A DNA stretch of 64,000 bases from Lepidodermella squamata. Taxonomy: Eukaryota; Animalia; Gastrotricha. The position numbers and the translations under genes are program-made. Under the pieces are notes generated by a model. That model was not told where the DNA came from, did not search any database, and was given only the letters and a program-made list of their open reading frames with translations. Positions 1 to 44,000 of the stretch are shown in pieces. The stretch lies in NCBI GenBank assembly GCA_047495785.1, contig JBLDXI010000030.1, positions 186,001 through 250,000 on the forward strand. Direction: 5' to 3'. Positions within the stretch are counted from its first letter, which is position 1, and each line of letters begins with the position of its first letter.

Positions 1-6433
<6,433 letters not shown>

Positions 6434-15149: not shown

Positions 15150-15245
15150 ATAAATCGATGCAGCCCGGCACTTCCGTTTCCTGTATGTGCAACTTGGCTT
15201 TTGTACGTTCGACACTTTGCCATATAGGAGAACGGATTTCGTAAT
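15150..15245 (+). promoter_or_regulatory. Conserved upstream block shared by LGIC paralogs 1 and 2 (second copy ~16905-16995)
   Basis: GCAACTTGGCT...CGACACTTTGCCATAT...GAGAACGGATT occurs upstream of both start codons. Confidence 0.5.
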
Positions 15246-15284
15246 ATTTATGTAAGTCTATAGTCAGACTTTGGAAATTCGGAA

Positions 15285-18301: not shown

Positions 18302-18617
18302 TAGGCTCGCTTCTATTAACTCTGCCAACTCGAGAATTGGTATGGCTAAAGACATTAAAATGAACCGTGTTCTATCGATCACTCGAAAACAACTATCAGA
18401 GGTTTTTCCGGAAAAGCAGGTTGCCGAAAGTAAGTAAAAACTGTTGGTATAAAGTCACCGTTTACCTCTTGCCATAATATGGATGCGTACATTAAAAGCG
18501 TATCACAACACGATACATATGTCCAATAACTCACAAAGGGCTTACAAATATATGACATAGTCCTCTAAGTCTGTGAAATCATACAATACGAGATACGGGC
18601 TTGGACAATTGAAAGCT

Positions 18618-19843: not shown

Positions 19844-20049
19844 CTTTCAGTTATGCCTTGATTCGTGAATTGGCTATGGGTCTGCTGCCAGCCCCATCAA
19901 TAATTCAACTTTCGTTGAAATTCATTTTCATTTTAAAGAGACTGCTAGTGTTTCGGCCCGCCTCTTCACACTTAAAAAGGTAAATCAATATCACTTCACC
20001 GATGTTCCTATTTCTCGACATTTGTTTTGGCAAAATGACACAGTTCTCA

Positions 20050-21274
20050 TTAAGACAGCATAAGAGTGAAGAATGCTATGTCGCAGCAGGCAATCAAAGT
20101 GAAAGCGCTGCCAGCGATTAAAAAGTCCATAAAGCGGTGCAAATGCATCCTCCAGCGTTTTAGTATTCGCTGTTTGAAGGTTTTAGAAAAGCCTGATGCG
20201 ATGCAAACGTAACTAGTCATAATTACAGCTGCGATGAACTTAGCCACGACCATGTAGACCAGATATACTGTATCGGACGTTTTGGGCATCATTCCGAAAA
20301 TCAGGGTGAGAAACACTGCATAGGCTAGTACGACCGTTACGCAAAATGCTGAGCGGTCGATTTTCAGCGGCTCAGTGATGATGCATATGATTTGGAGGAT
20401 GAAGAGAGCGATGGTCGGGACGAAAATATTGCAGACGTAGTAGCTGCTTTTGCGTCGAAATCTCATGGTAAAATTAAGGTGGCTGAAAGCTCCCTCGCCC
20501 TGTTCGGATAGCGAAGCGTTGGATATGAGGGGCTCGACGAGTTTCCAAATGTCTGTCTCGGATATGAAGGAATCCCGAGCAGATATGTCGACTTCGAAGC
20601 CGGCGATTCGGTAGATGATCAGATTTGCATATTCATTCGGCTCTATGATCATCGAACATTGTTGTACATCAAATGGAAAATAGCGATACGAAAATGATGT
20701 GCAGGAAATGTCGAAGCGATCGAAAATAGAGCGGCTGGCGTCAGTGCTTTGTAACGGTTTGATCCAGACGTAATCCTCTGGTCTGAGAAAGCTGAGAAAT
20801 AGTCGATAGGTAATAGTAAACCCCGCATGCATACCTCTGTTTTGCAACTGGCGATCCGTAGGCAGTCATATGGACGATGTCTGGCGACCAGATTTCATTG
20901 ACTGGGATGCGGATGAGAATCTTACTTGCATCTTGAATAGCACAGGTTTCCCCCGGCAGCAAATCAGTGCACTGAGGGACAGGGCAGTTTAGGGGCCATG
21001 ACATGCCAAGAAGGAACACCAGTGAAAGCCGCTGTTGGATGTCGTCGATCTCCACGAATCGGTATAGAGATACTGAGATGTCAACAATGACTGGTTTCGA
21101 CTTATTCGTCGCCATAGCTTGTTCTGTTGGGAGGAAACTCGATCTAACTGCTGGGCAATATCGATAAAATTGAGTCTTGAGCTGTTCATAGTTTGAGGTC
21201 ATGTCAGCAGCTGCTTCTTCAACGAAGACGCATCTCAATATCAAAAGAACGCACAGCAAATATACTCGTAACAT
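20050..21274 (-). CDS. Atypical Cys-loop ligand-gated ion channel subunit 4
   Basis: Two exons (intron 20783-20834); signal peptide MLRVYLLCVLL, CTSFSYRYFPFDVQQC, 4 TM. Confidence 0.9.
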
Positions 21275-21580
21275 TTTCGAAGCTGTTTCCTTCAATCCAT
21301 AAGATAGAAATGACGGAGCCGAGAATTCCACACCAAAAGCTCGGTGCTAATAAAATGTCGATAACAAAGTGTGAACCATCTGTCAAATCTGTTTACCTTC
21401 TCGTCCAAAGTAACTAGGCAGCGTGCCTCGACCAAAAACAGTGTATGGGAGTGATTTTATTCGCTTGCGAAATCGAACAGCTTTGCTAGGAATGACTTAA
21501 CGTCGAACCATTTTACAATGTATCTAATCGTCTAATTGGCAAAGTATTCCCAACAAACTTTTAAAACGATATATCAGATT

Positions 21581-22802
21581 CTAAGGTGTCAGCATGAGAG
21601 TGAATAGAATCAAATCACAGATGGTAATAAAAGTCACAGCGATCGCAGCAATTACATAGTCTAAAAACCTGTGTAAAGGCATCTTCAAACGTGCCACCAT
21701 GCGATCCCTCATTCCCTGAGAAAAGCCCGAGCTTATACAGGCATAGGCTGTAATTACAACCGCCGTGACAAATTTGGCCGCTACCATGACAACCAGGTAA
21801 ACTATATCTGAAGTTTTAGGAATCATACCGAAAACAAGGGTCAGAATCACAGCGTAGGACAGAACAACCGTCACTCAAAATGCAGCTCTGTCATTTTTCA
21901 ATGGCTCAGCTATCAAACAGATTATTTGAAGTAGGAAAAGAGCGATCGTTGGCACGAAGACATTGCAAATGTAATAGCCGCTCTTCCGGCGGAATCTCAT
22001 GGTGAAATTAAGGTGGCTGAAAATCAAGGAACCGTCTAATTGTGCTGACAAGGATGTGTTATGAAGTAGGGGCTCGACTAGTGTCCATATATCAGCATCA
22101 GATATAAAGGTGTCTCTAACTGAAGAATCGACTGTAAAGCTGGCGATACGGTAGGTGACCTCCTTCGACTCTTCATTCGGCTCGAAAGTCATAGAACACT
22201 TTTGCGTATCGAATGGGAATCGGCGGTAGCTGAATTCAGTGCATGATATGTCGAAGCGGTCGAAAACGTATCGTGCGACGTTTAAATTCGATAACGGGTA
22301 CAACCAGGCGTTATCGGTAGACCTGGAAGTAAAAAGTTCACTTACAATTCGTAATTTAAACAACATTTTACCGAAGAGGGAGTATCGGGTGTGCGTATGC
22401 TGTCATATGAGAAAGTTCAGGGACCCAGACATCCTTCAGTGGAATATGGAACCCAATACCATTCGAGTTATTTACCGAGCATGCTTCCTCAGGCAACAAA
22501 TCACTGCATTTTGGGGTTGAGCAAGGAAGCTCCCATACCATTTTGATGACAAATACTAGCGACAGTCGCTGTTGCACGTCGTCGATCTCGACAAATCGGT
22601 ACATGATGATAGACACATTAACGATCAGTGGCTCAAAATAATTTGAGGCAATCGCTTTTTCGGTAGGCAGGTAATTCGATTTTATTGCTGGGCAGAACTG
22701 GTAGAAATTTCGTTTCATTTGGCCTGCGTAGGGTTCGGAAATGTCTGCACTTGTTGGAATTATCGCGAGCAAAGCACTGGCAACAATGATTGCTAGGAAC
22801 AT
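21581..22802 (-). pseudogene. Atypical Cys-loop channel subunit 5 with an in-frame TGA in M2
   Basis: Otherwise intact two-exon paralog. TGA at 21875-21877 replaces the Cys of DRAAFCVTVVLS that all six paralogs have. Confidence 0.75.
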
Positions 22803-23404
22803 TGCAGCAGGAAAATCCTTTAATATGTTATTCAAAGTGAATTTGATATTGGATAAAATGTTCAGCTTAGCCTTTGAGGGTGATGGACAGACAGCATGTG
22901 AGCATTGTGTTTTTTCTTACTGTGATATAGAGTTTTTAGAGCAGACTATTCGATCGCATGTATGTAATGAGAAGAAATGAAAGGAAATCGTTAAGACAGA
23001 ACATTGGAGATTGGAGCCGTCAGTTTTGAGACGATTGGTCCAGATGTTGGAACGACACATACCAAATCTCGGCTATTTAGCTGTACTTGTACTACATACT
23101 AGTACAATTACAGCAAGTATGTAGTATTATGTATGTAGTAGCTAGTATTATTGCCACTGCAAATGGCTGGCCATCAATACTGGGGGCCGGGTGAAACCCT
23201 TGTGTTGTCCGGTCACGTCGTTCACAAATCCGTCGAAACAGGGGCGTAACAAAGGGGGGCCAATGGGGCATCGGGTCCATTGCCTCTATTCACAAGTTAG
23301 CAAGTTGGTTGAAAGATCGTCAAGTTTTCGAACAAACCAAGGAAAAAATCGACTAAAAGCGTCACCAATAATTTAACCGTTGAAAATTTTCGGAAATTCG
23401 ACCG

Positions 23405-23884
23405 GCTGAGTTTGAAAGCTGGTCTCATTGTCTTCATTGTCAGTCTGATTTATATGGTGATATGGGCTTTAGTCAACACTCTCAAGTGCGAAAATGGCGC
23501 GCTGCAACAGGAACCGATCTACATTGAAAAGGAGGACGTTGACTGACGTTGGCTGAATACGCTTTGAAATGCTCGTCGCTTCATCAAAAAGAGTGGATGG
23601 CCGCTATTCTCGTAGCAAACCTCGTTGCTTCGGCTTGTGGATGCTATTTCGCCATTTTGTGTCACACTGCAAGTTTCATTAATCGCCATCCTAACAGCAA
23701 GTTTATTCTGAAAGCTGAGTTGAATTTCATCGCGATTTCTGTGGCGACTTGCCTCATAATTATCGCGGTTCCGGAGTCTCCCGTCACTGAACGTATTGTT
23801 ATTTCTGTGGCAGCTGTCTTCGTATCGATCTCCTCGACTGCGATTTTATACTTTTCGCATTGGAAAACGAAAACTCCGTCCTGA
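23405..23884 (+). pseudogene. 3' fragment of a class C GPCR (TM region)
   Basis: IYMVIWALVNTLKC...IYIEKED / YALKCSS...W...ATCLIII...ERIVISVAAVF aligns with the C-terminus of the 43224-44858 receptor. Frame is broken near 23540. Confidence 0.65.
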
Positions 23885-24034
23885 AAAAAACATATCCGAA
23901 TAGCCACTTGGATATATAGGCTAGGGTCGAGGTAGCTAACAGGAATTAATACTTTCACACCATTTTTTCATTTTCCGAGTTTTTTCCAAGAAATGTGTAG
24001 ATTTATTCAAATCTGCTCTCAAAGGATTAAAAAA

Positions 24035-25256
24035 CTAGCCTAAGGTCAGCATTAGAGTGAATAGAATTGAGTCACAGATGGTAATAACAATCACAGCGAT
24101 CGCAGCTACAACGTAGTCCAAAAATCTGTGTAACGGCATCTTCAAAGGAGACACCATGCGATCCCTCATTTTATCAGAAAAACCAGAACTTATACAGGCA
24201 TACGCTGTAATAACAACCGCCGTGACAAATTTAGCCGCTACCATGACAACCAAGTAAACAATATCTGAAGTTTTAGGAATCATACCGAAAACTAAGGTTA
24301 GAATCACCGCGTGAGAGAGTACAACTGTTACGCAAAACGCGGCTCTGTCATTTTTTAAAGGCTCGGCTATTAAGCAGATTATTTGAAGTAAGAACAGAGC
24401 GACAGTAGGCACAAAGACATTGCAAACGTAATAGCTGCTTTTCCGGCGAAATTTCATTTTGAAAGTTAAGCGACTGATAAGCAACGAACCCTCTTCTTCC
24501 GCGGATAGAGATGTATTGGAAATGAGAGGCTCGACTAGTGTCCATATATCCGTATCTGACATGAAGGTGTCTCTAACCGAGGAGTCGACCGTGAAGCGGG
24601 AAATTCGATAAGTGACATCCATCGACTGTTCATTGGCTTCGAAAGTCATCGAGCATTTTTGCGTATCGAATGGGAATCGGCGGTAGCTGAATTCAGTGCA
24701 CGATATGTCGAAGCGGTCGAAAACGTATCTTACGACGTTCAAATTCCAGAATGGGTAAAACCAGGCGTGATCAGTGGTCCTAATAATACATAATCCTGTA
24801 AAAATTGTTCAGCCTCGAGAAAATTCACCTTAAATGAAGGATTGGGTCTGTGTATGCTGTCATGTGATTAAGTTCAGGGTTCCAGACCTCATTCAGAGGG
24901 ATTAAAAATCCAATATTATCAATGCCTTTCATGGAGCAAGCTTCCACAGGCAGCAAATCACTGCATTTTGGGGGTAAGCAAGGCAGTTCCCATTCCATTT
25001 TGATTGCCATTACTAGCGACAGTCGTTGTTGCACGTCGTCTATCTCAACGAATCGGTACATTAAAATCGATACATTGACAATAAGTGGCTCAGAGTAATT
25101 TGAGGCTATCGCTTTTTCGGTAGGCAGGTAATTGGATTTTATAGCCGGGCAGAACTGGTAGAAATTTCGTTTCATTTGCCCGGCGTAAGGTTCGGAAATT
25201 TCTGCATTTGCTTGAAATCTCGCGAGCAAACCAACAGTTATGATAAAATGAAACAT
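24035..25256 (-). CDS. Atypical Cys-loop ligand-gated ion channel subunit 6
   Basis: Two exons (intron ~24780-24828); CTEFSYRRFPFDTQKC, 4 TM; close to subunits 5 and 7. Confidence 0.9.
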
Positions 25257-26026
25257 GGAGTAAAAAATTTAGTTCAATAGAGAACCATTGCGAGAAATCT
25301 GGGCCGTTGAGTCTGATTGCGATATCCACCTTCATTTCAGCTTAACTCAGCCGTGGCTAGGTATATGCCTAATCTTTTCTTTCTTGCATTGTTCTTATTG
25401 TTTGCGTTTGCTTCCATATCCCAATGACGGTACCAGAGCGTACTGAAACGAAAGAAATGGGTCTAAATAAATGGGCGGTTCCCGTCTGCGCCACTCATTT
25501 TGCGCGACACGCGAAACATGTAAATATATGTGTATTTTGCGCGACGCGTTCGCACGTGCACTACCTGCTACTGGTTAAGCGTTAAGCTGTCGCACTTGGT
25601 GGTGATGAGAAGTCTTAATCAGTTTAGTCACCCTAGTCATTGCTCAGCAAACACTTCATTTCTCTCAACAATCTTTAGAGTTTAGAATTTAGTAAATCTC
25701 CAGACCAGCCGCCAGCTGAAAGGGGCCGGCCGCCTAAGGCTAAGCATAGCTTGCTTCCGGTTCCGGTCGCTGAACGCCTGCTTAGTCCACCGCAAAGGAA
25801 GCCCGGAAGGCCGCCTGAGAAGATGCAGGAAGGAGTCACCCATGGCTTCTAATCGACAGGCGACAAGGAGAGGCCGAAGGTCAATACGATGAACCAATCG
25901 ATTCGAATCCCGGCCTTGCCAGGAAACAAATCAGAGTGCCGCTAATGCAGCAGGTACACCCGAAATCGTAATAACACCAAGTGAATCATCATAGTTTTCT
26001 TATAAATCAAACACTACAATTAATTT

Positions 26027-26278
26027 GTGTTTAGTCACCTCAACGGCGATCAGAGTTGTTCGGACCTCGCCTGCCAATTGTCGTGCGATATATCGAAACG
26101 GTTACGGCGGCATCATACCCTGTACCAAGGCCTCAAGTTTCTCGGGTCAAAACACCCCAAAACCGGCAAAATCTATCACCGCTGTTGGTGTAATAAAAGC
26201 AAGAGCTGCAGGGTCAAATTAGACGGTGTTTCTGAGTTGCCGCCAGACTTCGTCGACGGAGTAGTTGGAAAGCAGTGA
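26027..26278 (+). mobile_element. Probable FLYWCH-type zinc-finger fragment (Mutator-like element relic)
   Basis: LYQGLKF...KTGKIYHRCWCNKSKSCRVKL resembles the FLYWCH pattern L-x-x-G-Y-x-F...Y-W-R-C-x(n)-C-x-A-R-L. The distal His ligands are missing. Confidence 0.4.
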
Positions 26279-26463
26279 AAGCTGGAGTATCACTCGGTAT
26301 CACTCTGATTTATATGGTAATATGGGCTTTTAGTCGACTCTCTCAGTCGCGGAAATGTCGCTCTTCAACGAGGACCGATATAACTTGAAAAGGAGGCTTC
26401 GTATCGATCACCTCGACTGCGATTTTATACTTCTTGAATTTGAAAACGAAACCTCTGCCATGA
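26275..26463 (+). pseudogene. Internally deleted second copy of the class C GPCR 3' fragment
   Basis: Nucleotide similarity to 23413-23535 joined directly to 23819-23883 (CTGATTTATATGGT..., CTTCGTATCGATC-CCTCGACTGCGATTTTATACTT). Confidence 0.65.
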
Positions 26464-27023
26464 ATAAATAGAGAGGCAATGCTGAGAAACTGTCATTCCG
26501 CCCAATTCCATATAATTCCATTACGAGCCAACATGGGCCGATTGCGCAGAGCGCAGGGTAAATCCCATAGGCAGTGCATTGCTATTGCTCGGCAGCGTCG
26601 TTTTTTCTCAAGGAGTATTTACCCCTCTCATTTACCCCATTTACGACTACAAAATGAGTGTGGGTAAATACCCTGGGTAATCACGCCCTTTTCCGAGTAG
26701 AATAGCCGCAATTAACGCTAGTGATCCGGTGCCTCGTGTCTATCTATAGACACTTCACGGTCTGTCGTGTCTATCTATCAATAGATACTACTTCATACGT
26801 GCTAAGAGTGGCGCAGCAGCCTAGAGATGACGAAACCGCCCCGTCCCCGTTTCTAGTTTAACTTGCAAGCAATTGTCATGCTGCTAGTGAGAGGTTATAA
26901 GAATAATAAACTGGGCGATGGTGAGATTTAAAGCTTTTTCATTCTTTTTTCAACTTGGATTCAATATTCACCGAAATTCGCGATTTATACAAATCTGTTC
27001 TCATTGGATTCTAAAAAAGCAGA

Positions 27024-28240
27024 CTATGGGTACAGCATTAGAGTGAATAGGATCACGTCACAGCAGAAAATAACAATCACAGCGATTGCAGCTATAAGAT
27101 AGTCTAGAAATCTGTGTAAAGGCATTCTCAAGCATGGCACCATGCGAATCCTCATTTTATCAGAAAAACCAGAACTGATACAGGCATACGCTGTAATAAC
27201 AACCGCCGCGAGAAATTTAGCTGCTACCATGACAACCAAGTAAACGATATCTGAGGTTTTGGGAATCATACCGAAAACAAGGGTCAGAATCACAGCGTAG
27301 GATAGAACAACTGTCACACAAAACGCGGCCCTATCATTCTTCAAAGGCTCAGCTATCAAACAGATTATTTGAAGCAAGAACAGTGCGATCGTTGGCACGA
27401 AAACATTGCAAATGTAATACCCGCTCTTCCGGCGGAATCTCATAGTAAACGTAAGGCGGCTGAACACCAACCCGTCCGATTCTGCTGACAGAGATGTGTT
27501 TTGAATGAGAGGCTCGACTAATGTCCATTTATCAGTATCAGATATGAAGGTGTCTCGAACTGACGCGTCGACCGTGAAGCTAGCGATTCGATATATAACA
27601 TCCATGGATTGTTCATTCGGTTCGAAAATCATCGAGCATTTTTGCGTATCGAATGGGAATCGGCGGTAGCTGAATTCAGTGCAGGATATGTCGAAGCGAT
27701 CGAAAACGAATCGTATAACGTTTAAATTTGCAAATGGGTACAACCACGCGTGATCAGTAATATAACAAAATAATTCCTGTAAACAATCGTTAGTCCCAAT
27801 GAAATTAACCGTAAATGCAGTATTGGGTCTGTATAAGCTGTCAAATGATTAAGTTCGGGGTTCCAGATCTCGTTAATAAAAGGGATCAAGAATCCGAGTT
27901 TATCTTGGTCTTTTATCGAGCATGCTTCCACAGGTAACAAATCACTGCATTTCGGGACTTTGCAAGGCAGTTCCCATTCTATTTTCATGAGCAATACTAG
28001 GGACAGTCGCTGTTGCACGTCGTCTATCTCAACGAATCGGTACATGACGATAGATACATTGACAAGCAGTGGCTCAGAGTAATTGGAGGCGATCGCCTTT
28101 TCCGTAGGGAGGTAATTCGATTTTATGGCTGGGCAGAACTGATTGAAATTTCGTTTCATTTGGCCAGCATAGGATTCGGAAATTTCTGCACGTGACGAAA
28201 CCGTAGCAAGCAAAGCAACTGTTACGATAAAGTTAAACAT
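27024..28240 (-). CDS. Atypical Cys-loop ligand-gated ion channel subunit 7
   Basis: Two exons with an intron near 27760-27809 (acceptor uncertain); CTEFSYRRFPFDTQKC, 4 TM. Confidence 0.85.
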
Positions 28241-30058
28241 TGCGGAAGACAAAATCGTGCACCTGAGCCGTTGAAGAGTCCAATTGCGATATCCAGCTTC
28301 ATTTCAACTGAACTCAGACGTTGCCAGGTATTTGCGTGTTTATTTTTTTCTTTATTGTTCTTTTTATTTGCTTTCGCTCCTATATCATGATGACGGTGCC
28401 AGAACGTACTGAAACGATAAGCAATAGAAGGTAATGTCTAAATACATAAATGAGGTTCTATCACTAAATTTGAGAGCGCGCCCACCTAATTAAATGCAAA
28501 CAGGCGTTGCTAAATCTTCGCGCCACCTAAATAAGGAAATAATGAAATAATGAATAATGAAGAGCTTTCATGGCGACAGTACATGTATACAATTAAAAGC
28601 CCATTCATCTTCTTACTTCTAGTGGTTTGTCAGAAAGTCTCATACCAAGCTAACAAAAAAGTATTCAATAGCCACTGAAAAAGGAACGTGCTACTGAGTG
28701 GATAGAAACAAATTAGGTATGTATACTTGGTCTTCAGTCTGTATACGCTACCTTGTGAGCTGAACATTCGAAGAGCGGGGTTCGTCAGGGCGATACAGTT
28801 TATTTCTTAGAGGACCGCCATTCTATTGCTACCGCATTTGGGCGACATTTCGCCCTTCATAGGAGAGCTCTTTGTTGTTCAGGACTGAACAAATATCGGA
28901 AAATGAAAAATGATGACCCCTTGATGATAATCCCAGAGCATAAATAGAGTAGAACTGGTGCTAGACTGGTGCCATTTACCGTTTTTCTCATGATAAATAC
29001 CAACTACCAACTAGGGTAATTCGTCGCGTTGTGTTTGAAAGGGTCGAAATGATCTATCCAAATAATGATGGGCTGAGCGAAAGCCATGAGATCAATAAAA
29101 ACGGAGGTTATTTGCTAATTGCCATTGGATGCAACGGTTTCCGAGAGGGAAGTAATAATAGACATACTGCCACTTGGCGTGGCGATAATACAACACTGTG
29201 TCAATATTTTTCACATTGAAACACAAATATGTATTTTTTCATATTTAAAATATCCATCAAAAAAGGTTTGAATGGCTACAAAAGTAATCATGTGCATACC
29301 ACATGCATAATTAGATAGATCATCTCGAGAGGAATAAACCTATGTTGGGCCATCTTCGGTTTTCATATTAAATTTCAGCAACAATAAAATCTTGGCGACC
29401 ATTTCAAACGTAACGCGACGAATTATTTCAGCATGAAATTAAAAGGAAAATTTTCAGTATTTTTGGAGAATCTTTCACTAAAAGTTGCGAATTCTTTTTT
29501 CCATTAAAAGGAACGCCTACTCTTCGCAACGGACTTGAGGCGTTTGAAAGCCGAATGAAAATAAGATTTCATTCTAATAATTGACTGAGTTTATATCTCC
29601 AGTTAAGCCCTTCACTTTCGCTGCGGGCGATTCTCCGCGGAATTTTCCCCTGTTTTCCTAGGAGTATTTCAAGTCACCTCCGCGGAAAATAGGTCTCACG
29701 TGCGCACTTGCGCTTAAAACCGCTGTTTCTGTTTTGAGCGCGGCTGCCATTGTTTACCGATTACGCAACCAACGTATTGTCAAATCTTCGCGTCACGTGT
29801 CCATGTCACGACAAAATTACGCAAAATAAAGTGATAAAAGTAAAGAAAAACAGTTTTATTCTAGATTTTCTTCGCCGAGTTTACTGATTCAAAATCAACA
29901 ATTGTTCACAATTTATCGGTGCCATCAATCATGATTGGGAATTGAAACAGATAGTGATCAAAGATCAAAGAGAAATATATAAAGGTTTTGGTTACCAAAC
30001 AATAACAAATGAAAACAGTAATATGGCGATATCAGCGAGCATTTCGCTTGCAAAACGA

Positions 30059-31043
30059 TTAGTAGTTGCCGGCGCTTTTTTTTGCAGCCGCAGCTCTCTT
30101 GCGTTTACAATCGCGTACATTCGTACAAATGCCGGCGCGGACAATGCGAAATAAATCACAATTTTTGATAACTAGGCGAACAATTTCATTGATCAACTCG
30201 TCATCCTCGAGCGCGGACGAGAACCCGAGTGCCGCCGCTTTCTTTTCCAACATTTCAATCAAATTTCTAGAAAATCCGTACGCATCTCGCTTTTCAGCGT
30301 GCAATAAATCGCACAGTTTTTTCTTCTCAACAGAATAGGCACCAGCGAGTAAAACAACCTGCGTTTGGTTCCGGCGAACAGCATTTTGATGATCCGCGCT
30401 TGAGCTCGTTTCCGTCAACGTGCGCGCGCTCTGTTGGCGAGTCTTCGCGCCAGCTGGTGAAATTGCGCGACGTGAACGCAGGTGCGCGCCGCGCCCTGCG
30501 ATTGGCGAGGCGGGTGTGGGCGGAGCGGAGGGCAGCGATGTGGCGTGCTGGCGCGGCGTAGAAGCCACCGGTCGTGCTGGCTTTGAAACTCGGCGGCGGC
30601 GGCATGTTGACTGAAGTCGTACGTGTCATGAGCCGACAACGTAGCCGTAGACGTCGAAGGTGCATTCTTAGCAGTTTTAGCCGTTTTTCCAGGGACAAAC
30701 TTCGGAGCCTTGTGGATATAGTCGTGGTAATCCACTACTCGTTGGGCGCTGCAAGACACGGCAGCAAGAACCTATTCAAAGACAGAATTGAAAAAATATG
30801 AGATTAAAAAGATAAAATATTGAAAAGGAAAAAAATCCAGATCACAAGCTAGATAAAAAATGCAGAAAAACAAACCTTATTGTTTGGTGGTGATTCGCTT
30901 TGATCCGATTCGCTTTCTTCCGAAACGCTTTCTTCTGATTCCGATACCGATTTAGTGCGCTGTTTCGCCAGCTCGAGAGCTCTGCGGTGAAATTCGCCAA
31001 CTTTCGAGCCGAGGAATTTATGAAATATATTATTTGAAGCCAT
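30059..31043 (-). CDS. Cargo gene A: acidic/low-complexity protein with a probable C-terminal BEN-like domain, one apparent frameshift
   Basis: Exon 31043-30876, GT-AG intron 30875-30772, then exon 2. A one-base shift near 30583 (EFQ/KPARPV) joins the C-terminal frame FSRNLIEML...ALEDDELINEIVRLV...FRIVRAGICTNVRDCKRK. Confidence 0.5.
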
Positions 31044-31361: not shown

Positions 31362-32393
31362 CTAGTTTTTTTTGCCGCGGCGTGTGGGTTTCGGTGTTGC
31401 TTTAGCTACGACATCTCCAATCGCAGCTAAATATGCCCACCAAAATTTCAGTACTTTCCATAAGCTTTTCAGAATGTTCCAAGCCGGAAAAATAATGCGC
31501 CCGAAATAGGCTAATTGTGTCATAAAAATCCACCTCAAAAAAATGGCGATCATGTACTCGCCAAAGAAATATTTCGCAGCGATTCCTTGTTTCGACCGGA
31601 TAAATAGATGAGACGAGCATTCACTCAGAAATAATAATGCAAGAGAAATCAGATGAATTTTCCTGCGGAAAATCAGCAGAAAAGCGAGGAAAAAAAGATA
31701 AAAAGAACCTCGATACCGGTAAAACCCAGCTTCCAATTCAGAGCTATAGATCGTTTGAGAAGACAGAACAGTACAAAATGTTGATTGCTTCAAAAATGAG
31801 ATTAAATCCAGCCAGATTCCATCCAACGGAACAAAATCGGCCAATGATTTCAAGGCAAAACTACTAAGTTCAAGAAAAGGATTGTTTTCATCCTTGAAGT
31901 AAGTAACGAAACTACAAATGTCTCTAGCGTCTGAAAGCAAAAGTGCCCATTGCATGAGCTCGTGAGGCTCCAAAGATTTCGTGATACAAGATATCTGATT
32001 AGAAACGTTGGCGCCTAATGCAATCGGACATGATAATTCTTTGGAAGAATTTCTGTCCTTCAACCAGCATTTTAGCATGGTCTCGGCAAAATTGCCCCAA
32101 GAAACGATATTATTTGCACAATACGACTTCGCTTTTTCCAACCAGCTCTTGTAACAAGGCGTGTTTTTTGATTGGATGCGCTCGAAGGCATCGCGACCCG
32201 CGATAACTTGAACCGGGGGTACTTCGGTTATTTCCAGGGCGCAACTCATTGCCCACAGAACAGAGAAGCAAACAACAAACGACAACTTTTCTGACTTTCC
32301 CTTGAGCATGTTGAGCATGAGCATGAGCGGGTTGACTCGAAATAATATCGCCAAGCGTTTTCGATGGCGCCCGATGCCAACATTATATACCAT
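31362..32393 (-). CDS. Cargo gene B: GEX1/Brambleberry/Kar5-like membrane protein
   Basis: Signal-like segment (LSFVVCFSVLWAMSCA), six-Cys domain C-x11-C-x16-C-x12-C-x13-C-x23-C (FAETMLKCWLKD, SDARDICSF), about 3 C-terminal TM helices and a basic tail. The true start may be a downstream Met near 32310. Confidence 0.68.
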   Translation of the reverse strand: MVYNVGIGRHRKRLAILFRVNPLMLMLNMLKGKSEKLSFVVCFSVLWAMSCALEITEVPPVQVIAGRDAFERIQSKNTPCYKSWLEKAKSYCANNIVSWGNFAETMLKCWLKDRNSSKELSCPIALGANVSNQISCITKSLEPHELMQWALLLSDARDICSFVTYFKDENNPFLELSSFALKSLADFVPLDGIWLDLISFLKQSTFCTVLSSQTIYSSELEAGFYRYRGSFYLFFLAFLLIFRRKIHLISLALLFLSECSSHLFIRSKQGIAAKYFFGEYMIAIFLRWIFMTQLAYFGRIIFPAWNILKSLWKVLKFWWAYLAAIGDVVAKATPKPTRRGKKN

Positions 32394-32713
32394 CCATTTC
32401 TGCGGCTCCTTGAAACGCCCTGGTGATCGTCACGCATACAATTTTTCAATTGCTTTCAATGCTTTTATTTCTTTCAATTGTTACCTTCAATTCAACCACT
32501 CGCGCAGCAGTTCGAGCGCAACGAGCACGAGTGTGTGCAATCCTGGCGCGCATGGGGCTGTGAAGTGTGACTAAATTATTTCGCGCGCGCGCGCGCACCT
32601 GCGGAAATTTTGCGCGCGTCAACGGTAAACGGTAATTACAGGGCGTCCTGTGCGACATTGGCGCGGCCGAGAGGAAGTAGCCTTCAGCCGAGGCATTCGC
32701 AGTTTTATTTTAG

Positions 32714-32991
32714 ATGAAAAATGAGAAATGCCGCCGCGACTTGGTGTTATGCAGTTTTAGCCGAGACTGCCAAACCGCAAATGCGGCAACAACAAGAAGA
32801 ATCGAGCTTGAAAAAGGAAGTAAAAGATTATAAATCGTACTCATTCAATTTTGCTTTTATCATTTCGATCATGTTTTCTCTCGAAACTTCAGATTATGAG
32901 ATGAGCTACGAAGAGGGCGTGGGTGTTGTTACTCGCGGCGCCGTTCGTTTTTTCATCTCATCAACGTTGCCGCCGACACCGCCGGCTACGT

Positions 32992-33032
<41 letters not shown>

Positions 33033-33677
33033 GCCACGACCACGGCTGCGACTGCGACTACGACTACGACAGCGACCTCACCACCGGCAAGCAGGCCGAC
33101 AATTACGCGAGCACCGTCGAGTTTCTGGCCAACATCGCCATCAACTCCGGTCTCAACGATCGCCGATGTTAACAGTCTGATCGCGCTTGCCGCCAGTATT
33201 TCAGCTCTGGCTGTCTACATTCTCGTCGCTGCTGTAGCATTGTTCTGCCTCTGGCTGTGGTGCTTCAAGAGGCCTCGGGCGTCAGCAGTCAACATTGAGG
33301 CGCCACCTCCAAGGCCGCCGCCGCCGCCCCCACCGTGTCCGCCGTGCCGCGAGCAAGTCGAACCGTGTCGGGTAGAAGCCGTCGTCGAGCAGCAACAACG
33401 CGAGGCTCAGCCGCAAGTTCAAGTGGCTGCTGCGGCCGCAGCTCCGCCTCAAGAAGCAGCAGCTCCGCCTCAAGAAGCAGCCGGCCCTGCGCCTGTGGTA
33501 CCGAATGCCGCTGTTGCTGTTGCTGTCCCTCAAGTTGAAGTCGCACCGCCGCCTCCGCCACCGCCTTTTCACCCCGCGGCCCCTGCACCGCCGTTGTTTG
33601 TTTTTCAAGGCGCTAACGCGCCGCCGGAAAATCAGCAGCGCCCCAGAAGGGGGCGGCCAAAGAAGACGCAAGCGTGA
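32714..33677 (+). CDS. Cargo gene C: single-pass membrane protein with Thr-rich stalk, Pro/Ala/Gln-rich tail and C-terminal AT-hook
   Basis: (ACCACG)n Thr run, TM ALAVYILVAAVALFCLWLWCF followed by KRPR, and terminal RPRRGRPKK. An alternative 5' model (ATG 32714, intron 32820-32892) is in frame with the ORF-track frame. Confidence 0.7.
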
Positions 33678-36600
33678 ACACCAGTGTTCCAGCATGAACC
33701 GGCCCTTTTCAGGGCCACAAGTCCTTGCAACAGTGTTTCCCTAGTTTTTTCCAGTCATTTACGGAGATATTTTGAAATAAACATCTTGGCATTTTTCTCG
33801 TTGCTGTTTTATATTTCTAGCTGTTTTGCAGACTTGCCGCTGCTGGCTCCGCCGTTTTGTGTGTGTGCTGGGTGACAATGCCGGGGGGAACCCCCATACT
33901 GTCACCGTTTGTGAGTTGACAAGTTGTTTGTTTGTTTGTATGCCGCCAATGTGTTCACAATCTATGCACGCCTTTCGCGCACGCTGTTTATTATATCAAA
34001 TAGTTTTGGCTTTTGGGTCTAAATGCGATTGCTGATATTCTTGCGTGGTTATATGACAATTGAGCAACGGCAATTCGGAATTCGGCAAAAAAAGAAATGA
34101 AAGTTCTTTGTGATTTTTGAGACGTCCCGTTCGTTGAAGGCCATGGGTCCGGAATGAGCACTCTTAGGGTCGCTCGTTGGGGTCTCTTGAGGACAGCTCG
34201 GTAGCGATTGGTGCAGTCTTGCTGACATTCCCAATCTACCACTTTTGGCTTTTGTAACACGATGAAGTCGTCGGCCACCGTTGGGGCAGGGCGTCATTGA
34301 TAAATCGTGGTCGACCCGAGTGGAGATCTAACTCATGCCCATCGATCTTGACGCTCAATGCCCAGCAGACAGCTATCCACTGAACTACTGTGTGCCCAAT
34401 TCCACAATATTTGTTTTATTCGATCGAAAACGACAACTCGGCCAACGGCAGTGAAAATCCAACATACCCTTGAGCGACAATTTGGCAGAAGACACCACCC
34501 GTGCCGCCAGCCGCCAGTGTGCGCACAGTCTATGCACGCCTGTCGTCTACTCCACTAATTATTCTGTTTTGGCTTTTTGATCTAAAACTAGTTAACCACC
34601 CTTTACATTACAGCCGTATCGTACTGGGAGCAAGCTACGTAACGAAGTTGGTGGTAGATTGGAGACCGTCTCACGAGCGGTCATTTCATTACCTCGATCC
34701 TGGCGCCCCATTTTGAGATGCGATATTACTAACCTTTTTTTTATAGAAGGTAGACGCTCTAACAGCCAAACATGAAGCGTGGCAAGTGGCAACTACTCAG
34801 GAGTCTTAAAAGGTACTGGCCGAAGCGTTCGGCCGGCCCTATGAAGCTCGGGAATGGCGGCGTCCTTGCGCTGTCTGTCGATGTTGCTCATAGGTTACTC
34901 GATCAGTTGTTGAAACTCATTACGCCGTTGACCGAATCTGTTGCTCTTAGGCTCTTGGGCTGCTGCAGCCTGCAGTAGGATGCGTCCGAACTTGATCTGC
35001 GACGAACTGAGTCTCTACAACTGCCAGTACCGCTGAGTTTTCCGTTAGCCAGCGCTTGGTTCAATTTAGCATACACTTTGACTCGCCTATGGCTTTCTAC
35101 AACTCCCGGGTTCGATGGTTGTAGAAACTTTCTAACCGTAGCACCACCGTAGTTCTTACCGTAGTACCGTAGTGAACACGTTGCCGTTTAGTACGGTACC
35201 GTAGGTGGACAAAATGATAAGTGACAGTAGCAGATGAGATTTGAAACTACCGCGCCGCAGTGCTTTACCGTAGTTTCTACCGTAGTCGTGACTTAGAACT
35301 AAGATACATATGTACGGTATGCATGGTGCTAGGGGTGTCACCTCTTTTGTACATAATGTGCACAACTGGTCTCCTCCGTTTACCCAGCACCTTTGGCACG
35401 GCGCAGGACGCCATCTTGAGAGTCCGTCCTACAACTACTACGCCCCCGAGCACTGCTGTCGCTTGCCAGGCGAGTTTGTGTGGCGCATTCAACGCCGCTA
35501 TGAGGTAACCTTGGGAGGTAACGCCGTTCGCTAAGTGGTGCCGTTGCGTGAGGTTATGGAAAGGTTGCTGTGAATCTTGGTCGTGGCATGCATAGAGATT
35601 ACAGCAGGCTCGATTCAGGCCTACCCCGATAGTTTACAGGTAGAACTACCATCATTGTTCTCGTCAGTCTCAAAGGTTCCCCCCGGCGCTACTGCGGCAG
35701 CTTTGCTGCTGCTGTTGCCAATTATCTGATATTTATCGCTTGTTTAGCCAGGTGTAGTCAAGTGCAGTCAAGTGCCAACATAACGCGCGCTCCATTGTTG
35801 CGCATATTTTGAAATAATAGCTGAGTGGTTCACAATAACGGGCGAGATCGAAACGCGCGAGCAGCGTTGCGCGTCTCATTCTTCGAGTTGCGCGCGCCAA
35901 TTTTCAACAGCCTCTGATTTTCGTAACAACATAAAGCTTTTTCAACCCATGAAAATCACGACGACCAGCGGAACCTAAATTCTACTCTACCGCTGATTCG
36001 ATTTCCTCAAGTACTAGGTTTGATTAGGTCTTAGAACTGTTTTCGAAATTAGAATTATATTATGTCCAACCGCAATATCTTAGAAATAGTTATTTTCCAA
36101 GACATTTGGTATGTAAAGGTGAGCCCCGAAAGCCAACATAGTCCGGTATTTCCAGCAGGATAAGTGAAAAAATACGGTATTTAATTTCGTCTTCAGATTT
36201 TTTGGCGCGGCAGCTGAGAAAAATTTTACGTTTTTTGTATCGACAGCCTCATCCTAGTTGATTCGACCCTTGAAGGAATAGAATTTGCAAAGAAACCAAC
36301 CAGATTTGTGCTTGGAAAGAACCTGCATTGTAGGCCGGGTTTCGTATGGTCAAAGTCCAAAGCATGATTCACGCTACTGAAATAATGCAGCTAGTTTTTA
36401 GAATAATTTTTCAAATTCTCCAGATTCTCCAGATTATTGAAGAGTATCTTGAGAATGCTGGGTTATTTTTTACAGTGGAATTTCTAAAATAGTTTGAAAA
36501 ATCTGAAAAATTTGAAAAATAAGGCTACGTATATAACGTTACAGAGTAGTGCTATTTTTAACCGTCACGCGCTATTTTTAGACTTGTACTTTGACCCTGC

Positions 36601-36706
36601 AAACCCGGCCTACAATGTGTATCAAATTATAGAGGGGATTCCGTCGGGGAAAAATCAAAACTTGAAGATAAATTTGGCATTTTTTTATTGACAGAAATAG
36701 AAAAAT

Positions 36707-39138
36707 ATGCCTCATCACATAATTTATCATCCTTTAGCTACCAAATTATTTGTAATGTCTGACGTCGTCGTCGACGACGACTGGATCGATCAGTTATTAG
36801 AGCCGCCGTTGGTATTCGACTTTCTTGGTACGCGGCGGCTTCTCGTTCAACCTGATTCTCAACTGGACCCGTATGGCGTATTCAAGCTCATTTTCGACGA
36901 AGTGATGGTGAAAATGATTTGCGAAGAAACCAACGACCAGGCCGAAAAGAAGATAGAAGCAAACACTCTGCCCAATGCTCGAATTTTGGCTTGGAAAAAT
37001 CTGGTTCCAGAGGAATTCAGAGTTTGGACTGGAATTTGTCTGCTGATGACATTAGTCCAAAAGTCAACGTTCAACAAATATTGGTCAACGGAGCCGCTAA
37101 CCGCAACTCCATCGTTCGCCACGCTCATGTCTCGTGATCGATTTTTGCTGATTTTATCCTGCCTTCATTTTGTTAATAACGACTTGAAAGAGCAGCTCGA
37201 ACCCAACGACAGGCTCTGGAAGGTAGGTTATAAAAATATATTCTCGATTTTTTTTACTCGTTGAACATTTTTTGAAGACTTTTCGTTTTTTTTTAATTTA
37301 ATCTATTTTTTTCTAATCAACAGATCCGGCCTATTCTCAACCACTTTCAAGATCGCATGCGATCGATCTATTCGCCGCACAGATACCTCTCAATCGATGA
37401 GCAAAACCTGTTGTTCCGCGGGCGCCTCGGGTTCAAAGTTTACATAAAAAACAAGCGCCATAAATTTGGAATCAAGGTAAATAATTTGCTTAGAAATGTC
37501 GTAAAATGAAAAAAATGATTTCGCCAGAAAACGAAATTCGCGAATTTTATTTTCGACTTGGAAATCCTAGCTAATTTGCCAAAAATACCAAAAGCGATTT
37601 TGACTCGCTGGAATTTTTTTCGCCGATTATTTCTTTTTTTTCATCGCAGATCTACATGTTGTGTGAATCTGAAACCGGTATCGCGTTACGCTTTCATGTT
37701 TACACAGCGTCTTCGTGCGAGCAAGACGGAATCATAGCCGGCCCTGGTCACACCAGATCGGTTGTTGAGGGCCTCATGAGAGATTTTCTTGATCAGGGAT
37801 TTTCCTTGTTCATGGACAATTTCTACAACTGTGTCGAATTAGCGAAGTTCCTCTTCAACCGTCTAACTTATCTAACAGGTAAACAAAAATTTTCCTTTTG
37901 CGTCCATAAAAATCTCAACCCATCACACAAATTTACGTCAACATTTTATATTGAATAGGCACTCTGAATCCCAAGCGAAAGGGAAATCCTGAACTTGTTG
38001 TACAACATAAACTCCAGCGCAATGAAATGGTGTGGCTGAGAAGCGGCCCTGTTTATGTTTCCAAATGGAAGGACAAGCGCGATGTTTTGATGCTATCAAC
38101 TGAATTTCCGCCAGTATGGGCCAACCCACCCACCAGTCGCAAAACAGCTTCTATCGAGAAGTACCTGTCGACCAACGCCGACGAGTCGCATATCAACGTT
38201 GCGGGCGACGAAAATTCAGCGAACGCCAGCTTCGAACCGCTGCAAGAAGAGGCGGTTGTCGAACCGAATTTTGCGGGTCACCAGGCCGACGAAAGCTCAT
38301 CTTCGTTTGAAGCGGGTGCAGACTCATCTGATGACGAGATTGTGGAAGACGATAAGAGCAGCGATGAGGATGGGTCATCTTCAGGCTCGGAATGCGGCGA
38401 GGAAGAGGCGCCTAGCCGAGTTGATTCAAGGAAAAAGCCGGGCCCGGCCGCTGCCGCGCGCAAACGCAAGTTGCCGGATCAGACCGGGAAAGGCGCGTCT
38501 AAAAACGGGCCGAAAGCGAAAAACACGCGCCAAGCACGTCGCCCTCCCCAAGATCGGCTTCCTAAGCCGCTGCACGTCCTCATCTACAACATTCTGATGA
38601 ATGGAGTGGATAAAAATGACCAAAAGGTTTGTTGAATTTCCATTGGTTTCGTTTTGATGCTGTCATTATCCATCGATTCATTCGATTCAGTTTTTTTCGG
38701 TTTTAATTTTTATTACGTCATTTGCAGGTATCTTATTACGAATTTCTGAGGAAGTCGCTGAAATGGTACCGAAAGGTGTACTTTCGCACTCTCGAGTACA
38801 TCTTGTTGAACGCTTACGAGATCTACAAGTTCAACACCGGCATCAAAATAACGCTTGAAGATTTTCGACTCGCCGTGATCAAAGGCCTCATTGGCGAGAA
38901 ATGGGATGTGATCGCTGATCAATTCAAGCCAAAACCGGCGACTCGAACTGAAGAAAAGCCGTACCACGAGCTGACCGCTATCGCGCCAAAGTCAACTCGC
39001 GTGTGCCTACAGTGCGGGAGCAAAGCCTCGAAGGAATGCAGATTCTGCCCCAAGGGCAAAAATGGCTTTTACCCTGCCTTTCACGACAGTTGCACCGGCA
39101 AATGGCATCATGTCCACTATTACGGCTATTCCCTATAG
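36707..39138 (+). CDS. piggyBac transposase (PGBD4-like DDD), 5 exons, apparently intact
   Basis: Exons 36707(or 36755)-37222, 37324-37476, 37650-37878, 37959-38626 and 38728-39138 splice in frame. Motifs: MSRDRF, catalytic SIDE, FMDNFY and GVDKNDQ, plus WKDKRDVLMLST, KWYRK and a C-terminal CxxC...CxxC...H..C domain. Confidence 0.93.
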
Positions 39139-39869
39139 GTAAGAGTCACAAGGTACAACATTTTCGTAAATTCGCGCTATAGCTAAATCTCATAGGTTGT
39201 GGTACGTGTGGGCTAATTATCGCGCACACATACTTAGGTGTGCGTAAAAAATGGCCCGCGCGGTGCCATTACGACAAGAAGTTACACGTCTATTTTTGAA
39301 AGAAATGTCATTTTAGCTATAACGATTATTTCGAAAGCCGGAGGGGCGGCTGCGCGGCGCCGTGCGTGATGAAAATGTTGGATTTTTTGCCATCGTTTTT
39401 TATTGAGGCGTGTCTTGAACGCCTCCGTTCTTGATAAGCGTTCTACTTCCAACTGTTAAATAACATCTATTTTTCAGCTTGTGTCTGCAGATCATAGCGT
39501 CAATTCTTTACTACAATTTCCCGTTGTCGACTTCCCTCTCGAGAAAGTTGGCTCAGTGCTTACGAGAAGAAAAATGAATAAATTATTTCGTTTTTCGGAA
39601 ATTATTTTCAACTGCTCATGTTTTTGTTGATGTTTTTACTTCGAAAAACCACTGCAAGAGAATAAAAGGCGTTTTTTTATGTGTTGAAACATGCGTTAAT
39701 TAAATGCGCGAGAATTCCGCGGAGTGTGCGTGCCGCGCGGTGAAAATCCTCCGCGGAGAGCAGTAATTACTGCCCGCCGCAGTGAAAGTGTTAATGTATA
39801 TCATCCTGTTTTGGCAAAACTAGATGATTCTCCTGCTGTTGGCAGCTTCAACCTTACTTCAAACCTCTT

Positions 39870-40460: not shown

Positions 40461-41006
40461 TCTTCCATTCAAAAGTAGTCAGTAAACGAATTATTGATGA
40501 TTGAAAAAATGACTTTGAAATCCCGAAGTTTGCCTCGATGAATATCATTTTCTTCACAGTATCGCATTAATAGAAATCCGACTTTGGACCTCGAAACTTC
40601 ATCTATTAATGCTGTAAAGTTGAATGTTGAAATAAATTCTTCCCAATGATTGGCACCTTTGCCCTTAGCCAAATTATACTTGAGCTTATAAGTGTAACAA
40701 TATCACTGTCTGTAATTGGTACGAACTCGAAAAATCTGACAGCTTGATTAGCGTAGGCCTTCTGGTGAATTCAATCTTAGCAAGCAATATCTCATTCCAC
40801 AGGACGGTAATAATCATTCGACCCAGGTCTCCGAAGGCTTCTGTGCTGATACAGTTACGCGAAAATCCGTTATGATACGTGACATTAGCAGTGTTCTGCA
40901 TGCAAAAACTTTGCTCCAAATTAGCTTCGTCACGCCCACATTAAAAAATAATTGCTCCTCTGGCCCAATAATTTATTGCTGCTATTCCTCAGCATCGCAA
41001 ACTTCA

Positions 41007-44000
41007 ATGCAACAGAAGGCAATGTTTTTACTTTTGCTGGCTTTCGGCGTTCCCGTTGTAGTATCTGAAATGACGATTCAAGTTCCAGTATTCTTGCCAT
41101 TCACTGGTCTCCAGCCAAATCAATACAGAACATGCCGAGCTGTTACTGAGCTGGTTTTCAACAAGTTTAATGAAGACCCAGCTCTGTTACCTGGCTATCG
41201 AGTCGAACCCGAGTTCATGGACGACAACAACGGGCCGTTGTTGGTTCAACGACTTGTCGAATTTGACTCGCGATATAAACTAGATAACACCTCAACAATT
41301 CGTGCGCCAGTTATCATAGGCCCAGTCAATAACTGCCAGTTGACAGCTAGTTTTGTCCATGTGCTGGGGTATATTCAAATCGCTATGTGTGCAGGCGATT
41401 TCCTACTCAACAAGGCATTGTACCCGAACCTTTTCCTCATCAGACCGCTTGCTTACCACGCTTGGAATGCAAGGGTTCGTTTCATGCTCGACATCGGTAA
41501 CTGGAAACGGGTTGCTCTCATTGCTACTTCCAACATCCAAGAGACAGCGAACGCTCGGGTCTTCAACGATCTCGCTCTCAAAGCTGGGATGCAAGTCTAC
41601 GTTGATATCGTGAATGATTTCACAGACGAGTCAACGATAGCCTTGAGGCAGTCCGATGCCAGAATAATCGTTTTAGCTGTACCCTGAGCAGCAAGTGCAC
41701 GTTTTTTGCAAAATACTGCGAAGTTCCAGTGGGAATTGCAGGAAACTGCCTGAAAACGCCGTTTACTGTCATTTTTCACATTTTTTCAAAACTTACTGCA
41801 GTTTTTGGAAAAAACTGGAAGTTAAAGCAGGAATCCGTAGTCATTTCGCGAAATTGACACAGTTTTTTCATGAAACTCGGGAAATTCGCGGCATTTTATT
41901 TGCGACCCGAAGTTAACTTCCATGTCAAATATTTCTTCGTCGCGCAGTTGAAAAACTTTCGATTTTTATTCATTTTCACTGCGAAGTGAGAAGTATAGTG
42001 AACGAAAGTGAACGAAATTCGATGGCTCGACGTCTAGTTTTCATTGCGGAAAATTCCCTTGTTCGAAAATCTGCCTTCTACCTTTCGGGATCAAACTGTT
42101 TTTATTTATCATAAAATGTCCCGTTTTTCCCGGATTTTTCCTAATTTTTCCTAATTATTTACCTGGATCCTGAAAATAACCGAATTTTTATCGTTTTCAG
42201 CCTGAACCATCAAGAATATAAGAATGCCAGCAAAATTCGATAATTTAGATATTTCGTAAAAGCCAAATTTTCAATGGCTGAAAATTGTCGTTCTAAATAA
42301 AAGCTGAAATAGGGCAAAATCATTGTTATTGGGGCGCTCGATTGTTGTGCACACAAGCCTCAGGGTGTTGCGTAATCACGCCATGCTTCAAAAATGTGGC
42401 TTTTTGCTTCATTCCAATCATATTATTTTTGTTTTAAATTTCAAAACATCAGTTCCTATGTCATATTTAGTAAGAATTTTTCGTCCGGCCTCAATTTCGC
42501 ATTTTGAGCTTCATCAATCCCCGCCGCCTTGCTACCAGGTGTGTCGACCATGCAATTTGAACAAGTCAGATAATTATCGAATTTTCAAGGTAATTTTGAT
42601 ATTAATTCGATTTTCTTTAATTTACCCGCAATTTTCAAAGGTTTGTCCCGCGAATCGATTTAGCTGTCAAACCAGTCTTAACGAGCCGGTCAACAATTCG
42701 TAACGGTATCGATGAATAATTAAGGTATTTTAGTGTTCAATTAATTTCAATTATTAATTTCAATTAATTTCTACAGGTTATCGGGCCTGCTCCAGTGGCG
42801 GATTTCTGAATCGATCACAGCCGTTGTTCGAGGATGGCGTCTCGTGAAACAGCATCTACTATTAACTTGACAATTTTTCATTTTTTTTTGATCAGTTTTG
42901 ATGAATAAAATGATACTTGCATCGACGGATTTGCGTGAAGGGTAAAACTGTCTTTTTTGAAACAGAGAGTGAAAGCCGCATTTTTAATAGTGAATGCGAA
43001 GTACAAATGGCCCTGAGTGAAAGTTCTAGTGAAATTAGCAACGAGCAAGTGACTGCGCAGTAGAAACCATCTCTCACCACAAAAACTCTCACCGCAGAAA
43101 ACCACCCAGAAAACTGTCCAGCTCGGCAAAAAACTAGACTTTTGACAGAATACTGCCAACAGAAAAACTCTCGCTAATTTGCATATTTAGTTTTTTTGAT
43201 TTAGGCAGTTAAAAGGCCCGAAATTGTCGCTCAGGGTATCGTCGAATATTTCCCTGACATACACTATTCTATGTCAATGCTTCAAATTCGGGATAACTGG
43301 GCCGAGGTATGTTTTCTTTCTGGGTGGGAGCACTTTCGCAGATCCCAAGTCTCTGCCGAATGAAACCTACCCTGGTTGTACGAGAGAAATCATAGCGATT
43401 CAATACAAATTTTCATTTATGGCGTCAAGCCAGCTCATCTCAGAAGACACGGTGGGGAAGAGCCAACTAGGCTACTCTCTAGTTGAATTCGACAGAATGC
43501 TCGATAACTACACCGGTTCGCTGCGCCATCCTGATTATTCAAGCCGATTCATCTGCCATGATGCGGCTCTTCAAGGTCTTCTAATTCTCGGCGAAGGTCA
43601 AAAGGTTCTGATTAAAAGAGGCCTGAGCCTCTCAAACATCTCCACCCATCCATTCGAAATATCCCAAGTGATGAATGAAACAGGTATGAAACTGAAATTC
43701 GCTGGTCTGAAGAGTGAGGGCCTCACTTCATATAACGACCGAGGAGAGGTTACCGGCAGCAAGTGGCCGATAACTCAATGGACACCAGCTAGCGGTCTGA
43801 AGGTTGTCTATTACATAACTAAGCCTCCAAATGACAGCAACACTGACCCCAACTCTTATAGATCGGTACCTGTTTCAAAAATTGAGTGGTACACAGCTTT
43901 CAAAAAGCCTATGAAGGACAGGGCGACATACGTTACAATCAACGAAGATGTACCTCTTGAGGCTAGAATTTCAATTTGGATTTTGGCCGCAATATCTTTC

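Follow-up and report, generated by a model that had tools for sequence, protein, structure and literature searches.

Gene content of the window

The window, that is, the whole 64-kb stretch of DNA analysed here, is gene-dense and consists of tandemly expanded, very divergent receptor genes. Its genes comprise nAChR-like Cys-loop channels, GABA-B-like and other ANF_receptor open reading frames (ORFs), ankyrin-repeat genes and EGF-bearing ORFs, and their introns are about 50 nt long with GT...AG ends. Gene strands are mostly minus left of 32.4 kb and plus right of 32.7 kb, and the ORF that is the subject of this analysis (hereafter, the target) lies at this switch. Gene content and intron length point to a compact genome of animal type. 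No Rfam families or tRNAs were found in the window. We considered and rejected the idea that the window is virus-like or a giant element, since the content is one of tandem host-type receptor, ankyrin and EGF genes. The main features at and beside the strand switch are the following:

31362–32393, minus strand: target ORF, one exon of 343 codons plus stop
32394–32720, no strand assigned: intergenic stretch of 327 bp between the head-to-head target and mucin-like gene, containing a GC-rich run
32721–33677, plus strand: mucin-like neighbour, an ORF of 318 aa, head-to-head with the target and located between it and the transposase gene
36707–39138, plus strand: gene of a piggyBac-type transposase, divided by four junctions into five ORF pieces

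The mucin-like ORF encodes a Thr run derived from a 12-nt-periodic ACG/ACC repeat, one membrane segment and a Pro/Ala/Gln-rich tail; its G+C content is 0.58 versus 0.43 for the window, and it is an orphan except for a weak compositional match to Pfam Mucin. Downstream of the target, the gene at 30059–31043 (minus strand) appears to be spliced, with an intron of about 105 nt and an ATG directly after a T-rich, ...TAG acceptor-like site; its product is Ser/Glu-rich, then Ala/Pro/Arg-rich, and has no family match.

Further from the switch, in the region 15200–28300, nAChR-like Cys-loop channel genes form a tandem array with at least seven members, of which two lie on the plus strand and five on the minus strand. 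The units of this array are 1.4–3.0 kb long and 62–86% alike in DNA, with two or three exons each and introns of about 50 nt, and their matches to Pfam models (E 1e-6 to 1e-9) indicate that they are far more divergent than ordinary animal subunits. A segmental duplication links 51400–55350 and 58150–61550 (offset about 6.2–6.7 kb, 72–84% identity); in each copy, a Ser/Thr-rich ORF containing internal repeats of 45–51 nt precedes an ORF that matches a ligand-binding domain, and a third gene, at 47945–49750, carries a 260-residue N-terminal extension ahead of its channel domains. The GABA-B-like ORF is a single exon of 752 aa at 8227–10485 (minus strand), with matches to ANF_receptor at 1.1e-9 and, in the PDB, to GABA-B subtype 1 at 1.7e-6, and no close relative of it was found in a set of 5.8 billion proteins. 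A second ANF_receptor ORF (40872–41687, plus strand) is located beyond the strand switch. At 100–4250, two interleaved families of 115–123-nt direct repeats (4–7 copies each, 60–83% alike) are irregularly spaced and overlap a 147-aa ORF without a family match.

A single-exon gene at the strand switch

The reading frame of the target is uninterrupted over its whole length. Analysis of codon log-likelihood, with the family-assigned genes of the same window as reference, revealed a score of +0.10 for the target's own frame, within the range of those reference genes, and scores of −0.15 to −0.35 for the other five; thus only one of the six frames scored positive. The claim of a preliminary description of this DNA that the gene is intronless was borne out, as there is one uninterrupted frame and the codon score is positive there only.

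It is highly improbable, and the least probable of the readings weighed here, that the target is not a gene but either an open frame that arose by chance or a decayed remnant. Such a reading would fit the lack of any homologue and the probably untranslated first 23–28 codons, but a frame of 343 codons with a positive codon score in that frame only argues against it, as does the coherent order of the encoded parts (signal peptide, sequons in predicted loops, Cys domain, membrane helices and basic tail). By our own estimate, random sequence of this base composition would yield a 343-codon open frame much less often than once in 64 kb. The target is a genuine, host-like gene with a single exon.

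As read from the sequence, a TATATAA motif overlaps the first ATG of the ORF (32384–32393). Because of this overlap, translation more likely starts not at the first ATG but at a group of methionine codons further in:

32307–32324, minus strand: three in-frame Met codons (residues 24, 26 and 29), candidate start

A start at Met24/26/29 would give the product a standard predicted signal peptide. The intergenic stretch between the target and its head-to-head neighbour (32394–32720) is a probable bidirectional promoter.

Segments and structure model of the product

From its N-terminus, the product comprises a signal peptide, a luminal domain with six Cys, a short linker, three to four membrane helices and a basic tail, encoded as follows:

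32229–32285, minus strand: signal-type hydrophobic segment, residues 37–55, after Met24/26/29 and a short basic stretch
31914–32156, minus strand: six-cysteine domain, residues 80–160, predicted helical
31716–31913, minus strand: linker, residues 161–226, 66 aa with 2 Pro and 2 Gly, model helices of at most 16 residues
31395–31715, minus strand: membrane region, residues 227–333, hydrophobic segments
31362–31394, minus strand: basic C-terminal tail of 10 residues (5 K/R), plus stop codon

Residues 80–160, straight after the signal segment, contain exactly six cysteines, at residues 80, 92, 109, 122, 136 and 160, with 11/16/12/13/23 residues between them. The peptides quoted in the preliminary description, its six cysteines with this spacing and its signal segment were all present in the 343-aa minus-strand ORF. 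Four further cysteines are located in the signal segment (42 and 51) and at residues 207 and 259. The Cys domain carries two N-x-S/T sequons, at residues 115 and 129, which are predicted to lie in a loop or at the edge of a helix. Membrane segments lie at about residues 228–245, 247–265 and 276–297, which are clear, and at 312–332, which is weaker and amphipathic; taken together, these hydrophobic segments, all within residues 228–332, agree with the about three transmembrane helices described earlier.

In the region that separates the Cys domain from the membrane helices, linker length and composition together with the structure model revealed no coiled coil. The linker is only 66 residues long, contains 2 Pro and 2 Gly, and forms short helices only in the model, and there is therefore no room for a coiled-coil hairpin. 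The "much shortened" coiled coil of the preliminary description is accordingly to be replaced by an absent one.

The single-sequence structure model of the full-length protein was poor (pLDDT 51). Among five models of the luminal domain (residues 54–226), the best had a pLDDT of 64 and a pTM of 0.60, and the other four had pLDDT values of 44–48. This best luminal-domain model is all-helical and compact, with pLDDT 67–86 across most of the Cys domain.

Searches for relatives

Searches with the target revealed no relative in any library. An exhaustive phmmer search against 1.84 billion representative proteins gave no match, a blank of limited weight, since an E-value of 0.001 in a library of this size demands a high bit score. 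Word-indexed searches of 5.8 billion proteins were likewise empty, both for the whole target and, at E ≤ 10, for residues 72–168, and no match was found among PDB sequences at E ≤ 10. In Pfam, neither the whole target nor residues 51–217 matched any family at E ≤ 10, including Tht1 (PF04163), the fungal Kar5 model, which is cited as built on Kar5 orthologues (PMC4291462) and was the profile of this kind among those searched, a GEX1/Brambleberry profile lying outside that set. In this the target differs from the Kar5 orthologues on which the Tht1 model rests. Scans of viral, prokaryotic and metagenome contigs yielded no relative, look-ups of the exact products of the target and of two neighbours returned nothing, and no second copy or paralogue of the target was found within the 64-kb window.

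Foldseek with the luminal model, run against PDB and BFVD, libraries without GEX1 or Kar5 models, gave no fold match; the best E-values were 0.74 (PDB) and 0.68 (BFVD, viral), for generic helical bundles. No other disulfide-rich family was matched by the Cys domain in Pfam or Foldseek, and our searches turned up no solved structure of the GEX1/Kar5/Brambleberry family.

These blank searches carry limited weight, because sequence conservation in the GEX1/Kar5/Brambleberry family is confined to the Cys-rich domain, and Kar5 itself escaped ordinary searches even among fungi. The preliminary description had proposed a GEX1/Kar5/Brambleberry-like protein and had named profile and fold comparisons as checks, with a better match to another disulfide-rich family as an outcome that would count against the proposal. 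Pfam and Foldseek gave no match, and no better disulfide-rich family was found. By that description's own test the GEX1/Kar5-like claim is thus not confirmed, yet it is not refuted either, because the tests used here could not have detected a family member this divergent.

The same results bear on a quite different reading, namely that the target is an unrelated, lineage-specific orphan: a small membrane glycoprotein of the secretory pathway, whose GEX1/Kar5-like Cys spacing arose by chance or by convergence, in the sense of helical, disulfide-stapled bundles. It could be, for example, a surface or ER accessory protein near receptor genes. The absence of a homologue at any threshold in any library and of a fold match favours an orphan, and so does the nature of the neighbouring genes, which are themselves highly divergent lineage-specific expansions. 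On the other hand, no alternative disulfide-rich family was matched.

Cysteine framework and comparison with GEX1, Kar5 and Brambleberry

Described members of the GEX1/Kar5/Brambleberry family begin with a signal peptide and an N-terminal Cys-rich domain, continue with one to three coiled coils and carry two to three membrane helices at the C-terminus, and they are located at the nuclear envelope. The six cysteines of the Cys-rich domain are kept in every orthologue, and a coiled coil is found in every described member. In yeast Kar5p, which is 504 aa long, the cysteines are C56, C68, C91, C105, C116 and C141, giving gaps of 11/22/13/10/24, and both coiled coils are essential (PMC4291462). In land-plant GEX1 of nine species, the gaps are 11/19/12/8/22 (supplements of PMC9324357 and PMC7586128), as taken from machine-read alignments whose rows were cross-checked against each other; gap 3 is one residue shorter in one moss sequence.

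Comparison of the target with these proteins revealed that gaps 1, 3 and 5 are inside the range spanned by Kar5p and plant GEX1, and that gaps 2 and 4 are each outside it by 3 residues, so that the summed distance of the target to the family ranges is 6; these ranges represent two clades only, yeast Kar5p and the nine land-plant GEX1 sequences. The chance that an unrelated six-Cys run comes this close was 2.1e-3 to 6.9e-3 with gaps uniform over 5–30, 8–26 or 10–25, and 1.3e-4 to 1.8e-4 with geometric gaps, the five null models together spanning 1.3e-4 to 6.9e-3. A layout and Cys framework this GEX1/Kar5-like would arise by chance about once per few hundred to few thousand six-Cys runs. In a six-frame translation of the window, the target ORF was the sole fit to the family framework at ±3 residues.

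Relative to land-plant GEX1 alone, gaps 1, 3 and 5 of the target are identical or within 1 residue, whereas gap 2 is shorter by 3 and gap 4 longer by 5. At the residue level, we used 26 columns that hold one residue class in all nine plant domains, each addressed by its offset from the nearest Cys, which dispenses with any placing of gaps. The target matched the class in 13 of the 26 columns, compared with a mean of 8.2 in shuffles (P = 0.027); the columns were chosen after seeing the data, and the null, made by shuffling the target's own non-Cys residues, ignores helical periodicity and is therefore optimistic, which makes the test a weak one. Columns common to plant GEX1 and the target include a hydrophobic-small pair ahead of Cys3, aromatic residues following both Cys1 and Cys3, an acidic position five residues ahead of Cys6 and, immediately before Cys6, an aliphatic one. 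The residue comparison of the target with GEX1/Kar5 consists of these column classes and of two alignments read side by side.

Likenesses extend to the overall architecture. As in GEX1, the Cys-rich domain is predicted to be helical and globular, and three membrane helices at the C-terminus of GEX1 compare with three to four in the target. However, plant GEX1 (591–639 aa in three plant sequences) has two features that the target lacks, an acidic region at the C-terminus and a long coiled coil between the Cys-rich domain and the membrane helices; in models of plant GEX1, this coiled coil is an antiparallel hairpin that brings the Cys-rich domain back beside the membrane helices. Kar5p/Tht1, like the target, begins with a signal peptide followed by six cysteines in a luminal N-terminal domain, and Kar5p and the target both exhibit a membrane-helix hairpin near the C-terminus. 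In contrast, Kar5p has two coiled coils essential for fusion within its 504 aa, where the 343-aa target has a 66-residue linker, and it has two membrane helices, compared with probably three to four in the target. Zebrafish Brambleberry and its paralogue zeat1, which we likened to the target by description only, have an N-terminal Cys-rich domain, a coiled coil, two membrane helices and a nuclear-envelope location.

The proposed likeness to GEX1/Kar5/Brambleberry therefore stands in part: six cysteines follow the signal peptide, three of the five gaps are in range and membrane helices are present at the C-terminus, but family membership found no significant profile, sequence or fold match. An unrelated orphan would account for the missing coiled coil, for the two Cys gaps that are off by 3, and for a residue-level support that is marginal (P = 0.027 with an optimistic null). 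Against it stand the low probability of an unrelated six-Cys run this close to the family framework, about 1e-4 to 7e-3, and the fact that the target keeps the family order of signal peptide, N-terminal Cys domain and C-terminal membrane-helix cluster. Taken together, we regard the orphan as a serious alternative, with a chance somewhat short of even.

The piggyBac-type gene and the question of transposon capture

The preliminary description had placed the target within a transposon, as a gene captured by a mobile element. The one sign of a mobile element is a piggyBac-type transposase gene (36707–39138, plus strand): matches of its pieces to the Pfam family DDE_Tnp_1_7 reach 1.7e-24, and the piggyBat transposase is matched by the first piece at 1.1e-16. 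As far as can be read from the DNA, the junctions between its pieces may be short introns like those of neighbouring genes, or frame breaks, and the gene could be a domesticated, intron-bearing or decayed copy. Its codon usage is host-like, and one piece contains a long acidic/basic low-complexity stretch.

Compared with piggyBac/PGBD elements, the gene has the transposase domain and the piggyBat match, but searches for inverted terminal repeats and TTAA ends came up empty. In particular, no pair of 13-nt inverted ends flanked by TTAA, with up to 3 mismatches allowed, was found to span it, and no long inverted repeats enclose it or the target. When the left (28.2–36.7 kb) and right (39.1–43.2 kb) flanks were compared, inverted matches did not exceed chance expectation, whether a small or a large element was assumed. 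The transposase gene is separated from the target by 4.3 kb, which include the mucin-like gene and 3 kb of ORF-poor DNA, and no other transposon-type domain was found from 29.0 to 36.7 kb.

Several repeats were observed in this part of the window. The ORF-poor stretch at 33700–36700 has a G+C content of about 0.5 and contains direct repeats about 568 nt apart (33942–34023 and 34510–34586). Nested palindromic repeats flank the transposase gene, one just upstream (36326–36617) and a similar one after it (39147–39389). At 29017–29425, a 37-nt inverted repeat pair, 84% complementary and 335 nt apart, resembles a miniature inverted-repeat element.

Capture of the target by a transposon is unsupported, because no ends enclose the target, the transposase gene lies beyond another gene, and there is no second copy in the window; a decayed element is nevertheless conceivable. 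The corresponding claim was thus not sustained, neither inverted repeats nor TTAA ends being found around the transposase or the target. A reading in which a piggyBac-type transposon carries the target as cargo along with the mucin-like and transposase genes draws on the presence of the transposase gene itself and on the fact that the region from about 28.3 to 40.8 kb interrupts the receptor-gene arrays and is partly richer in G+C. We consider it very unlikely, since TTAA-flanked or flank-to-flank inverted ends were not found, another gene and 3 kb of ORF-poor DNA separate target and transposase, the region between 29.0 and 36.7 kb holds no other transposon-type domain, the target has no second copy in the window, and its codon usage is like that of surrounding genes. 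Yet more unlikely is that a minimal, coiled-coil-less GEX1/Kar5/Brambleberry member travels as such piggyBac-type cargo; if that were true, a karyogamy-type gene would be mobile. The target is a resident of a receptor-gene-rich chromosomal region and not demonstrably transposon cargo.

Interpretation

Judged on its predicted protein, the target may be a very divergent, cut-down GEX1/Kar5-like variant without a coiled coil, a reading to which we assign a probability of about 0.4–0.45. We infer its homology to GEX1/Kar5/Brambleberry, and likewise its cell location and function. The target is not filed as a member of the family, because homology is unproven and the defining coiled coil was tested for and found absent.

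If the target is such a variant, its product would enter the ER via a cleaved signal peptide, and its Cys domain of ~80 residues, glycosylated, disulfide-bonded and all-helical, would face the lumen. A C-terminal bundle of three to four membrane helices would serve as the anchor, and the short basic tail would probably be cytosolic. The Cys-rich domain would be set directly on this membrane anchor, with no coiled-coil hairpin between. Since the plant coiled-coil hairpin returns the Cys-rich domain to the membrane helices, its loss would keep the geometry. The protein would reside in the ER and nuclear envelope, where luminal contacts of its Cys domain would hold or bridge nuclear membranes.

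If the target is instead an unrelated orphan, it would be an ordinary lineage-specific membrane glycoprotein, and it would show how far Cys spacing alone misleads. Nuclear-envelope fusion in sexual reproduction has one known conserved factor, the family to which the preferred reading links the target. A true GEX1/Kar5-like variant would mean that the Cys-rich domain can sit directly on its membrane anchor even when the coiled coil, essential in yeast, is missing, that the roles of the Cys-rich domain and the coiled coil are separable, and that the Cys framework provides a search rule for members that escape sequence searches. The distribution of GEX1/Kar5/Brambleberry is patchy, with no homologue found in, for example, C. 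elegans; if a minimal variant is resident in this compact, animal-type genome, this would suggest that the patchiness stems in part from members too divergent to detect.
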